A DNA stretch of 64,000 nt from Dicyema japonicum (taxonomy: Eukaryota; Animalia; Dicyemida). The stretch is from contig RDEW01000044.1 in NCBI GenBank assembly GCA_011109175.1, positions 350,743 through 414,742 on the forward strand. Reading direction: 5' to 3'. A model generated the notes under the pieces. That model did not search any database. It worked only from the letters and a program-made list of their open reading frames with translations, and was not told the origin of the DNA. Position 1 is the stretch's first letter. Each line of letters begins with the position of its first letter. Below are positions 21,701-40,149 of this stretch, piece after piece. A program made the translations under genes and the position numbers.

Positions 21701-22677
21701 TTGTTATTAATACAGAGGTATTTGGATACTGGGATTTTCCAGAGATAAATTGCTCCGTAATTTTAGAAGTCCTTTTTTTACATCAACATTGGGTTCCTGC
21801 ATGCATCTGAAGATACAGAATGTAATTTTTTACAATTAATTTTATAGAGCAAATATTGCCTCGATGGCCTTGAGGGACTCAATATCTATGTCCTTGTCGG
21901 CAATTCCATATTTATAATTAAGAAATCCTACGATTTTAGCCAAATGGCATTTCCTTTTTAATACTCGAAGAATCCCCGACCTATGCAAACATAAAGCCGA
22001 CTTCCTTTCCATAATTTTTTATGGAACTGGCAGAACATCAGTTCACTTTTGAAAATAACTTTCTCCCGAAAGTCTTACTGTTTAATATAACCTCCCTTTG
22101 TTACGTAGTCATTTATTGTATAAATTAGTTCGCTGAATTTAACTTTGTTTCTTGAGGTCCCCTACATTGCAAGAATTCAAGTAGAAAGAAAAAATTCATT
22201 TCAGACATTGTTTGATGTAAAACCCTTTGGAATTGTGAGGACTTCAAGTACACTGTCCTTTCGACTTTAATTAGACAGCATCGATTTTGATTTTACAAAT
22301 TTAAGAAGTTTCTCATATCCATTAGAGACATTATTTGATGTGATTAATTACTAACACTTAATTTATAGATTTAATTGTAGTTCTTTGTGCTATTCACTCA
22401 TAAACTTACATCACACTACTTCTAAGCAAGATACGCAATCACTTAATCCATAGTAACAAAAACGTCATGCAGAAGTTCAGGAAAGTTAAGTCAGATGAGT
22501 TATATTCGACAAGGACCCTTCCTGGTGGAAGACAATCTCGTCAAAACCAGTATACCTTAAGTGATACTTTTACGTAGCGCTAATGTTTATATTCATTGTT
22601 TACCATTATTATGAGAGAACGCCAGATAAGCAGAGTACTTTAACTGATTACTGATTTACTGGAGTTTTAATAATACA

Positions 22678-23512
22678 ATGGACGACTTTAACCAGGCAAA
22701 TATCCCTTTGAGGTATATCAGATAACAATATTTGCTTATTTTTGCGATTATGTGGTAGATTACGCTTTCTTGTGGGAAAACCCAAATTTATGTGATTAGT
22801 CAAGGTTACAACCGCGTTTGATGGCACGTGTTATTTGTGACAGTTTAAGGTCAGACATATTTCCAGCACATTCTATCCCCTAAATTTTTGATTTTTTCTC
22901 ATTTTGTATTTATTGTTGCAGTGAAGCTTCATATTGCGATAATTATCCAAACCTGAGTTCAGATCAAGAAGTGCACCACGATTATAGTCCGTTAGACCAA
23001 ATATCTCAACTTCCTCCCAAGAAAGAGACGACTGCACGTTTGGCTTTGCAATATCTTTAGAAGGTCGTAAAAGAGTCCGAACCTCATTTTCTAAGGAAAC
23101 GAAGGACATCTTTCATGCGTACTACAAAATCAACAGATTCCCCGACATTTACACTCGAAGTGAAATTGGTCAGAAAACGGGGATTAATGTGCTCCACATC
23201 AAAGTATAGTTTCATTTTGTTATTCCCCAGACATGGTTCAAAAATAAAAGATCCAGCGAAAAGAAGGAACGGGTTAGATCAGAGCCAATTCTGAGTCAAA
23301 AAGAACTCCCGAGCTATCTCTCTGACAATAATTCCGCGGATAATTCCTACAGCATGAAACATCAAGCAGAACTGCTCTATTTGCAACCAAATGGGGGTAA
23401 TTGTGTTTTTCAAACAATCCGTTCCCTCAGTATCACCCACCTATTGACAGAAGAGACTATCCTTCTTATGTCAAAGTCACAGTTATTCAAGGCCGCTAAT
23501 GACGAAATGTGA
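22678..23512 (+). CDS. Divergent K50 PRD-class homeobox gene (Otx/Pitx/Gsc-type); exons 22678-22712 (tentative), 22922-23037, 23061-23203, 23231-23512
   Basis: Spliced 60-aa homeodomain RKRVRTSFSKETKDIFHAYYKINRFPDIYTRSEIGQKTGINVLHIK|TWFKNKRSSEKKER with R5, F8, P26, R31, W48, F49, K50, N51, R53. The 27-nt intron (23204-23230) lies between codons 46 and 47, the diagnostic PRD-class position. A 23-nt phase-1 intron (23038-23060) lies just before the box. First exon and C-terminus are less certain. Confidence 0.85.
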
Positions 23513-23690
23513 AGGACTTTCAGCTGAGAATTACACCAAACGCCAAATCGAAAATCCATATTTTCATATATTACCTAGTTCTCATTTCTATAATCACGGG
23601 GGAAGGGAGAGACCCTGTAAATGTGGATTCTGCCATTATTATTGATTTACCTGATTTTCTAATAAAATTAGCCATCTCAAATTATTATTT

Positions 23691-23900: not shown

Positions 23901-24769
23901 CGAATTATTATTTCATTGAGAAAAATTTAATAATTTATTAGTCCAATGATTGCCACGTGGGAATTCTGTGGGAAATCTCAGCGAAATGTTGAAACGTGGG
24001 TCCCCCATTTAAAATTTAAAAACTACTAGACACTTCTAAATTTATTATTTAAGAAGTTTAGTGTGTCATTAAATATTGATATTTTATAGGCGATTATGCC
24101 GAATGTAAAACAATAATAATGGGAGAATCCACATTTACAGGGTCTCTCCCTTCCCTGTGATTATAGAAATGATGATTTTGTGAATTATATGAAAATATGG
24201 TTATTAATGTACCGTTCAATATTGAATCCAACAAGTTTGTAAGATTCCGAATATATACTTAGCCATAAGTCATTTGTCTGTATTTGAAAAGTAATCTGGT
24301 CTTTAAGGAGGTCTTTCTGATTCACAATAACGGTGATATATTGTGAATCTAATCACCCTACTTTTCTAAAATCCCCATTTTTATCGGCTGGTGCAAAACT
24401 CCATGACGATCCGAATTAAAAGACGAGACATGGACACCGAGGTCACCTAATTATACAATATTTCTTGTGTTCCTTTAGTTAAAAACATCCTCCTTTTTTT
24501 CAACCAAATTTTCACCTCTCTTCTCCCACTTTGAGCAAAATGTCTTCACACTAATTTCGACCAGAAAATCCTAATCTTACTAATATTTTGCTTTATATTT
24601 TGCCTTAAGAATTTTAATTACTTGCATTTTGCTCAACCCATTCGAGGTGGAAAAATAGATTTTCTAACTGCTCTTCCAGCAGAACTAAATTTTCTTAAAA
24701 AGAAAATAAATTTTCAATCAGATTCTGGTTGTTAGAAACGTTAGTGGTGTGCATCAATTGGTTAGCCCA

Positions 24770-38445: not shown

Positions 38446-40149
38446 TGAGCGCCTTTTCTTTAAGGCTTGAGCCATCATAGTCTTGTGGGAAAACGCATTA
38501 AAATTGAATAAGGAAATACTTTATTTTATGGTTCTAAATGAGGTCGCAGTTATTTATATAGTATCATCATCCTCAAAAAGGTTTTTCACTTCCAAGGAGC
38601 TGTCCAAGCATTTAAAGTCCTCCCAACAAATAGTTGTGAGACCACCTGACCGTTTTCTTCGCTCAGTTGCAATGATGAAAGCCAACGCTGCATCAATTAT
38701 AGTGGGATTTAATAATTAACGTCTAATTTTGACTTATGAGATTAATTTAATATTTATTTATTTTTAAAATTGTTTTACAATATGGAGAACCTATTTTATC
38801 ATTAATGCATTATTTCACGTATTTGTGCCACGTTGCTGTGGTCGTTGGTTTCTTTTTTTGTTGTATCATGTTTCTTGCAGTATTGTATTCTCTCTAATAT
38901 TTTATGAATATATTATTGGATTCATCATATAGTGTTGAAGTCTATTATCAAAATGTCTAATGTCTACATATTTTGGTAACCTATAAATATTGATCGTTCT
39001 TCACTATTTGATTTGTCTTATTGCTTACAGTCTAATAACAATACTCTTGAATATTTCTATCGACTAAACGTGGATCAACATCAAACGTGTACGAATTAAA
39101 TTCAATCAATATTGCCCAATTCTGGAAAGTATTAATTTACTTCTTTTTGAAGATATGTTGAATGTGGATAAATAAGGTCGATTATTTTTAGTGGTCGATT
39201 CAAGCGAATAGGCAAAAAAAATTTTCTTTAAATCTCCAGCATACACATAACGAGAAATTATTATTAATTGAACACGTTCGCCACATCGGTGGATTCATTA
39301 ACTTGTATCGCGAAATTTTCATGGCATTAACTTTTTATTTGTTCTACCACCGTTAAAATAAATAACATAATATCAATGACCTGCTGTTAATATTTTTTGA
39401 CATTTAAAAAAATCGTCGATGAACAGTATCATAGTGGTATATCCGAAATCATATTTTCAGCTGAGTGTCAATAAGAGTACGCACTATGTCTTTACAACAA
39501 GGAAGAATCAGTTTTTTGGCAATATTGTGAGGTTTCTTTTTTTTCGTTATACGTAATGAAATCATGTAAGATGAAGAGGACTTGAAGATTTTATTATTCC
39601 CATATTTAAGGGTTGAATTAAAGCGGTCGTATTTTTTGGAAGAAAATGTAAATGAACATTGGAATATTGTGGATTTCTGTGACAGCTCGCATTATCAAGT
39701 ATTCAAGGTTTCAGTGTTTCTGCAAAATCAATATGTATAAATTTAAGTCTATGACATTTTTCAAAAGATCTATCAATTTAAAATATATAAAACAATGTGT
39801 AATCACCCACAATATGGCAGAAGAGACTATCTCTTCTTATGTCAAAGTCACGGTTATTCAAGGCCGCTATTAACGAAATGTGAAGGAAATTCAGCTGAGA
39901 ATTACACCAAACGCAAATCGAAAATCCATATTTTCATATAATATTTGGTCATCATTTCTATAATCACGGGAAGGAGAGACCCTGTAAATGTGGATTCTGC
40001 CATAATTATTGATTTACCTAATTTTCTAATAAAAAGCTATCTCGAATTATTATTTCATTGAATAAAATTTATAGTTTATTAGTTCAAAGATTGACACGGG
40101 GAATTCTGTGGGAAATCTCAGTGAAATGTTAAAAAGTGGGTCCCCTATT

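Follow-up and report, generated by a model that had tools for sequence, protein, structure and literature searches.

We analyzed a 64,000-nucleotide (nt) stretch of the Dicyema japonicum genome (contig C317, positions 350743 to 414742; hereafter the window), in which a homeobox gene split by very short introns begins near position 22678 on the forward strand. The gene is likely to be real and probably functional. As judged from sequence comparisons, it would encode a small transcription factor with a very divergent paired-like (PRD, non-Pax) homeodomain (HD) carrying lysine at position 50 (K50), and it would belong to a D. japonicum family of five genes. An earlier note on this DNA had described a regulator of the Otx, Pitx, Gsc or Dmbx kind, retained in a probably reduced parasite. 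The reduced-parasite setting holds, the animal being the mesozoan D. japonicum. However, the gene is best read as a lineage-specific paired-like paralogue and not as a retained Otx or Pitx orthologue, because it and a second copy are recent duplicates within the five-member family and a canonical Otx-type gene lies elsewhere, on contig C24. Genome-wide scans covered the assembly of 67,542,437 bases in 377 contigs, and the gene model was searched exon by exon.

All features of the gene lie on the forward strand. The model has four or five exons with introns of 209, 23, 27 and probably 34 nt, and its predicted product is about 158 amino acids long (191 if intron 4 is unused). Exon 1 (22678 to 22712) begins with the ATG and holds 11 codons and 2 more bases. 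The start codon is in good context, with A at −3 and G at +4, and there is an in-frame TGA 33 nt upstream. Exon 1 is identical to that of the paralogue on contig C356 at 33 of 35 bases, versus 85% identity in the flank. Intron 1 (22713 to 22921; 209 nt, GT..AG) is long by the standards of the Dicyema genome. Its GT and AG are preserved in the paralogue, and four insertion or deletion (indel) events fall inside it. Exon 2 (22922 to 23037) is an open frame that encodes the N-terminal region and ends in phase 1. It has no Pfam match, and its only indel relative to the paralogue is a 3-nt, in-frame one.

Intron 2 (23038 to 23060; 23 nt, GT..AG, phase 1) has the same length in the paralogue. Exon 3 (23061 to 23203) encodes HD positions 1 to 46, that is, the N-terminal arm, helix 1, helix 2 and the start of helix 3. 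From 23063 to 23203 it is free of stops and reads 47 residues, HD positions 0 to 46: G RKRVRTSF SKETKDIFHAYYK INRFPDIYTRSEIGQKTG INVLHIK. Intron 3 (23204 to 23230; 27 nt, GT..AG, phase 0) separates HD codons 46 and 47, contains an in-frame TAG, and is also 27 nt long in the paralogue. Exon 4 (23231 to 23396) encodes HD positions 47 to 60 and a 41-residue tail without a known domain. The frame from 23231 reads TWFKNKRSSEKK..., which gives T47, W48, F49, K50, N51, K52 and R53, followed by S-S-E-K-K. The tail had no Pfam or PDB match, and the PDB search returned only a chance-level hit to a coiled-coil protein. A Pfam search up to an E value of 10 found no family in the exons before or after the homeodomain.

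These translations and the two GT..AG introns at 23038 to 23060 and 23204 to 23230 bear out the proposal of the earlier note that two micro-introns join a complete K50 homeodomain. Introns of this size are published for the genus. Comparison of cDNA with genomic DNA gave Dicyema introns of 26.2 +/- 1.9 nt (Aruga et al. 2007, PMC2222250), and the D. japonicum assembly of 67.5 Mb in 377 scaffolds has a mean intron of 38 bp (Lu et al. 2019, PMC6736024). According to a 2026 survey, myxobolids and D. japonicum are the only animals with such introns (PMC13644364). Because the published Dicyema introns are equally small, introns of 23 and 27 nt are the norm in D. japonicum.

Exon 3 alone passed the Pfam check for a homeodomain (PF00046), scoring 24.7 bits against a cut-off of 22.9 (E = 2e-5) over profile positions 1 to 41 of 57. 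In a six-frame PF00046 scan of the genome, the gene scored 25.3 bits and ranked 68th of 70 exon-level hits. R5, W48, F49, N51 and R53 are all present, and the helix 3 positions W48, F49, N51 and R53 are invariant in 37 reference domains. R3, R31 and K50 are present as well. Core hydrophobic positions carry conservative substitutions (F16, Y20, I34, I40 and I45). An AlphaFold2 model of the exon 3 part has a mean predicted local distance difference test score of 80.7, with helices at HD positions 10 to 22 and 28 to 38 and a turn from position 42. The reference helices lie near 10 to 22, 28 to 37 and 42 to 58, and the model covers the exon 3 part only. The top Foldseek matches listed for the model were all homeodomains, of the PRD and other classes, with template-modeling scores of about 0.8 and best root-mean-square deviations of 1.4 to 2.2 Å. 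A search of the ESM Atlas returned only weak, generic homeodomain clusters (score 0.76).

The protein would fold as a normal homeodomain and would bind DNA through R5, N51 and K50. It would recognize sites with a TAAT core and, owing to K50, prefer those with CC on the 3' side; in Otx, Pitx, Gsc and Bicoid, K50 selects TAATCC-type sites. Compared with 37 complete reference domains, the unusual residues are H44, K46, T47 (3 of the 37), K52 (1 of 37), S54 (1 of 37) and S55 (2 of 37). Together with F16 and Y20, they agree with the high divergence that the earlier note had seen. T47, K52, S54 and S55 are rare in the reference domains, and binding may therefore have shifted; these four residues may alter affinity or specificity. 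A TAATCC site upstream of the gene, at 22444, is at chance level: the window has 36 such sites versus 47 expected, and this one is absent from the paralogue.

Evidence that the gene is maintained comes from its paralogue. A block from 22186 to 23624 matches C356:951090-952522 at 82% identity; it takes in the upstream region, the 3' flank and every exon and intron, and the genome has no further full copy. Judging by the alignment, the window and C356 copies are products of a segmental duplication of about 1.5 kb and are now 18% diverged. Every GT and AG is retained, and the four exons are open in both copies, with no stops. Nei-Gojobori counts summed over the exons gave proportions of synonymous (pS) and nonsynonymous (pN) differences of 0.309 and 0.121 and a ratio of nonsynonymous to synonymous divergence (dN/dS) of 0.33, which is a sum over both lineages (Fisher p = 3.7e-5 for synonymous versus nonsynonymous). 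Differences at codon positions 1, 2 and 3 number 15, 21 and 35. There are 15 indel events in 751 noncoding nt and a single one, 3 nt long and in frame, in 460 coding nt, where 9.2 would be expected (P = 0.001). The preserved splice sites and frames, the dN/dS of 0.33 and the lack of frame-breaking indels in the exons show that selection has acted on a protein since the two copies arose. The window copy retains the family-typical residues F25, I28 and F49, and the C356 paralogue has Y, N and Y at these positions. Synonymous divergence (0.31) is about twice the intron and flank rate of 0.15 to 0.17; constraint on the noncoding parts, mutational bias or small numbers could account for this.

In the C356 contig itself, 433 nt of the 3' part of the locus (L068:3090-3957, about 952090 to 952956) are repeated after a single N at L068 position 3524, with 98.6% identity. 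It comprises the 27-nt intron with the last part of the homeobox exon before it and the exon that follows, and it resembles a haplotype or gap-closing artifact of assembly more than a true tandem copy.

Four other genes among the loci of the PF00046 scan have a matching layout, with a micro-intron after HD codon 46 followed by WF or WY-K-N-K/R-R. These are the C356 copy (...EPQIK / TWYKNKR), L043 on C78 (...VEKIK / FWFKNKR), L047 on C201 (...DNVVI / VWFKNRR) and L053 on C57 (...EDRII / VWFKNRR). In the alignment, all five K50 genes have in common an odd helix 1, (S/T)(K/Q)E.K(D/E)(I/V)(F/L), and the stretch FPD...R.EI. A profile of the five exon pieces found exactly five genome loci at 88 to 95 bits, and the next locus, a Q50 PRD gene, scored 32.5 bits. 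In the maximum-likelihood (ML) tree, the five genes group with support of 96/92 and the window and C356 copies with 95/91. Outside the homeobox, L043, L047 and L053 have no flanking motifs in common with the window gene, and only the C356 copy resembles it. Among 1.84 billion representative proteins, no single domain scored above 59 bits with the family profile, where family members would score 88 to 95. By these searches, the K50 family is found only in the D. japonicum genome. In L047 (C201:405835-405969, minus strand), the 22-nt intron at HD codons 46/47 is GT...GG and not GT...AG, so that this gene is either a decaying copy or one with a noncanonical acceptor.

We assigned the class mainly by profile scores. 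Exon 3 alone matched PDB chains of Paired (26.3 bits), Pax3 (24.7), DUX4 (23.6), OTX2 (22.9) and Lhx9 (21.3), followed by Phox2b, Pitx2 and Aristaless. The family profile, which ends at HD position 46 and is blind to K50, matched OTX2 best (51.2 bits), then DUX4, ceh-37, Paired, CRX, Pax3, Aristaless and Pax6, and further down Gsc (36.6 bits), Phox2b, Pitx2 (33.3 bits), Alx4 and Prrx2, with PRD chains down to about 31 bits; Gsc and Pitx2 thus rank under OTX2, Paired and the Pax proteins. The best single non-PRD domains were those of HOMEZ and HMBOX1 at about 30 bits, Lhx9 (26.7), Exd (24.6) and Engrailed (23.5); a two-domain engrailed construct sums to 40.8 bits. Against the 1.84 billion representatives, the family profile gave 3,898 matches at an E value of 0.001 or less, and the best single domains (at most 59 bits) were Otx-type. 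The best partners of the window exon in this set were Pax3/7-type, at 41 to 46% identity, in proteins with a paired box. The source names of the matches include OtxB, gooseberry-like, Mix.2-like and Phox2b, all of the PRD class.

The ML tree was built from HD positions 2 to 46 (45 columns, 51 rows), with D. japonicum ANTP, NK, LIM, POU, CUT and other homeoboxes and with outside references picked by the family profile. It nests the five-gene family in a clade of PRD sequences only (87/85). However, by approximately unbiased (AU) tests, a position of the family with LIM (p = 0.40), ANTP/NK (p = 0.51) or POU (p = 0.36) is not rejected. Because these three placements are not rejected and the outside references were chosen by profile, the class call rests mainly on the score gap and not on the tree. 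The PRD assignment of the earlier note therefore stands as the nearest class by score and by the ML topology, and it falls short where the AU tests leave three other placements unrejected.

A 46/47 intron is generally taken as a hallmark of the PRD class, a rule for which our literature search found no paper. In this genome, introns of 22 to 27 nt lie between codons 46 and 47 in eight other homeobox genes, with GT..AG in seven and GT..GG in L047. The same intron, at 23 to 25 nt, occurs in the LIM-homeobox genes L046 (C2:71735-72311) and L050 (C344:40071-40624), in the Evx-like L031 (C224) and in the TALE gene L054 (C319). Since LIM, Evx-like and TALE genes carry it, this intron is not diagnostic of PRD genes in D. 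japonicum, contrary to the use that the earlier note had made of it. Its position supports homeobox homology and does not mark the class.

The 3' end of the gene was judged by the same comparison with the paralogue. A candidate intron 4 (23397 to 23430; 34 nt, GT..AG, phase 1) contains the sole 1-nt indel relative to the paralogue. It would be followed by a candidate terminal exon (23431 to 23447) of five codons, the first split with exon 4, and then TGA at 23445 to 23447. With intron 4 removed, both paralogues stop five codons on, at the same aligned place. The alternative unspliced frame runs to a TGA at 23510 to 23512, and in the paralogue it is broken by two 1-nt insertions and one 9-nt deletion. 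The spliced form with the stop at 23445 to 23447 is therefore rather to be preferred on this alignment, and the 3' end at 23512 given in the earlier note is doubtful and probably wrong, its reading frame not being preserved in the paralogue. A dispersed repeat of about 260 nt (23432 to 23690, forward strand) starts one base past the candidate acceptor at 23430. Positions 39802 to 40055 of the window (forward strand) match it at 89% identity, and it recurs in part at 24105 to 24200 (minus strand) and on other contigs. It has AATAAA at 23662 to 23667 and an A/T-rich tail. Because the repeat spans 23432 to 23690, the stop codon and the 3' untranslated region would lie in repeat-derived sequence in both paralogues.

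Several observations weigh against a functional K50 paired-like gene. The first group would fit a duplicate that is unexpressed or decaying, in which case the window copy would be a young pseudogene that has acquired no stop so far. Total exon divergence (0.159) equals that of the flanks and introns, so constraint is moderate; because dN/dS was summed over the two lineages, the constraint could be due to a single copy. Both the poly(A) signal and the stop codon fall within the repeat, and L047, with its missing AG acceptor, would indicate that decay occurs in the family. A word search of 5.8 billion clusters with the last-exon frame (23210 to 23509) gave no match within 55 to 175 amino acids. 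The library of 1.84 billion proteins contained no product of the gene or its paralogues; because that library most likely lacks Dicyema transcripts, this null says nothing about expression. Yet despite 18% divergence, each copy still has its four exons open and none of its eight to ten splice dinucleotides lost, the indels fall almost entirely outside the exons, third-position changes predominate, and it is the window copy that keeps the family-typical residues 25, 28 and 49, which are changed in the paralogue. We consider a pseudogene unlikely.

The second group of observations concerns the class. For the window exon alone, the PRD margin over LIM is only about 5 bits, and the recognition helix is off consensus at five positions. 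The gene might then come from another homeobox class and have acquired K50 and a YPD-like loop by convergence; it could be of the LIM class, with its LIM domains lost, or of ANTP/NKL type. By eye, RTSF and QKTG also match LIM motifs, Lhx9 ranks fifth among the distinct PDB proteins matched by the exon, the LIM genes of this genome have the 46/47 intron, and L047 and L053 read WFKNRRMK, an ANTP-like ending; the AU tests allow placements with LIM, ANTP/NK and POU. However, the family profile puts PRD domains at least 20 bits over single non-PRD domains, with OTX2 at 51.2 and Lhx9 at 26.7 bits. The best of the 1.84 billion proteins are Otx- and Pax3/7-type, the ML tree places the family inside PRD and apart from LIM, and the nearest locus outside the family is a PRD Q50 gene. 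Six-frame scans of the genome found 34 LIM hits (PF00412), none on C317, and four SIX hits (PF16878), all beside other homeoboxes and none on C317. The true LIM, Pax and SIX genes of the genome carry these domains adjoining their homeoboxes, with LIM hits at most 600 nt away in the real LIM-homeobox genes. Convergence from another class thus seems improbable, more so than decay.

Among known families, the paired-like gene resembles two PRD groups in different ways. With Otx (OTX2, CRX, ceh-37 and planarian OtxB), it shares K50, the 46/47 intron, and the F/YPDI(F/Y).R.E loop and helix 2; OTX2 is the best PDB match of the five-gene profile, ceh-37 and CRX also rank among its ten best, and Otx-type domains prevail in the search of the 1.84 billion proteins with that profile. 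It differs from Otx in its helix 1, SKETKDIFHAYY versus TRAQLDVLEALF, in having T47, K52, S54 and S55, and in scoring Paired and Pax3 over OTX2 when the window exon is used alone. In the exons around the homeodomain, Pfam found no TF_Otx or other Otx tail motif. The earlier note had read FPDIYTR as closest to Otx; in the PDB comparison, PDIYTR is instead identical to Paired and Pax3. The S50 group of Pax3/7, Paired and gooseberry also supplies the best pairwise matches, and EIGQKTG is common to the window gene and P0031, a PAX-plus-homeodomain protein. This group differs in position 50, which is S and not K, and in its paired box. A six-frame scan with PF00292 found paired-box hits on C13, C135, C290 and C1 and none on C317, and the two PAX-linked homeoboxes of the genome are other loci, L027 and L064. 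With the LIM class, the gene has in common the RTSF and QKTG motifs and the micro-intron, and no LIM domains are nearby. The SINE class also has K50.

Direct descent from a bilaterian Otx, Pitx, Gsc or Dmbx gene by fast evolution is very unlikely, even with K50, OTX2 as the best match of the family profile and an Otx-like FPDIF.REEIS stretch in L043, since C24 carries a canonical Otx-type homeobox (RRERTTYTR (RRERTTYTRDQL)... and ...LPESRIQVWFKNRRAK), the window exon is nearer Paired and Pax3/7 than Otx, the copy stems from a recent duplication, no protein outside the D. japonicum genome exceeds an ordinary Otx-level score, and Pfam found in the gene's exons neither TF_Otx nor any other flanking motif, including those of Pitx and Dmbx (OAR) and of Gsc (eh1/GEH).

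Dicyemid-specific PRD genes have been described before. Transcriptomes of dicyemids contain Otx, Pax4/6 and four dicyemid-specific PRD groups, together with lineage-specific homeobox expansions; the four groups occur in the D. japonicum transcriptome, and six PRD homeoboxes were reported for that species (Zverkov et al. 2019, PMC6543705). The window gene resembles "Dicyemid PRD groups 1-4" of that survey, as compared by description only, in being dicyemid-specific, highly divergent and of no known family. Most likely, the five-gene family is among these groups. The survey's six PRD homeoboxes in D. japonicum compare with about nine PRD-like loci in our genome scan.

The 70 exon-level homeobox hits of the six-frame PF00046 scan represent roughly 60 loci. 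The published annotation has 5,012 gene models, only 16 of them with a homeobox (Lu et al. 2019, PMC6736024). Since about 60 loci stand against 16 models, many homeobox genes may be absent from the annotation. The scan also showed a homeobox family peculiar to this genome, with at least 10 copies (L016, L024, L029, L034, L037, L042, L045, L051, L066 and L067) and the pattern KKRRCFN...YPSK.EI..VAK..LPE..V..WFSNRRQK. Several of its copies have stops, and in the tree it lies beside POU-type homeoboxes. In two further pairs, L020/L021 (C90 and C21) and L057/L058 (C334 and C367), the homeobox exons and about a dozen flanking codons are identical across contigs. These pairs could represent haplotigs that were not merged, or else duplications of very recent date.

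Dicyemids are a classic example of a reduced body plan. The window gene illustrates how a homeobox can escape detection in such a genome: a 27-nt intron with an in-frame stop splits it, its domain has diverged strongly, and it offers no long open reading frame. If it is, as we think likely, a paired-like K50 gene of a five-gene family, homeobox evolution in dicyemids has not been one of loss alone, since a K50 paired-like group has expanded to five and its recent pair is under purifying selection. This expansion fits the "lineage-specific expansions" that Zverkov et al. 2019 noted from transcriptomes. The finding is relevant to gene annotation in dicyemids and to evolutionary developmental biology; it presents no new class of mechanism, since the animal is unusual but the kind of gene is ordinary. 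More tentatively, the family may have been built from an Otx-like ancestor, and its youngest pair may have gained a remodeled recognition helix with a new binding preference and may have taken its last exon, stop codon and poly(A) signal from a dispersed repeat. We regard this history as possible only. If true, it would be a case of regulatory innovation within extreme simplification, in an animal that has about 30 cells and a homeobox set among the smallest known.

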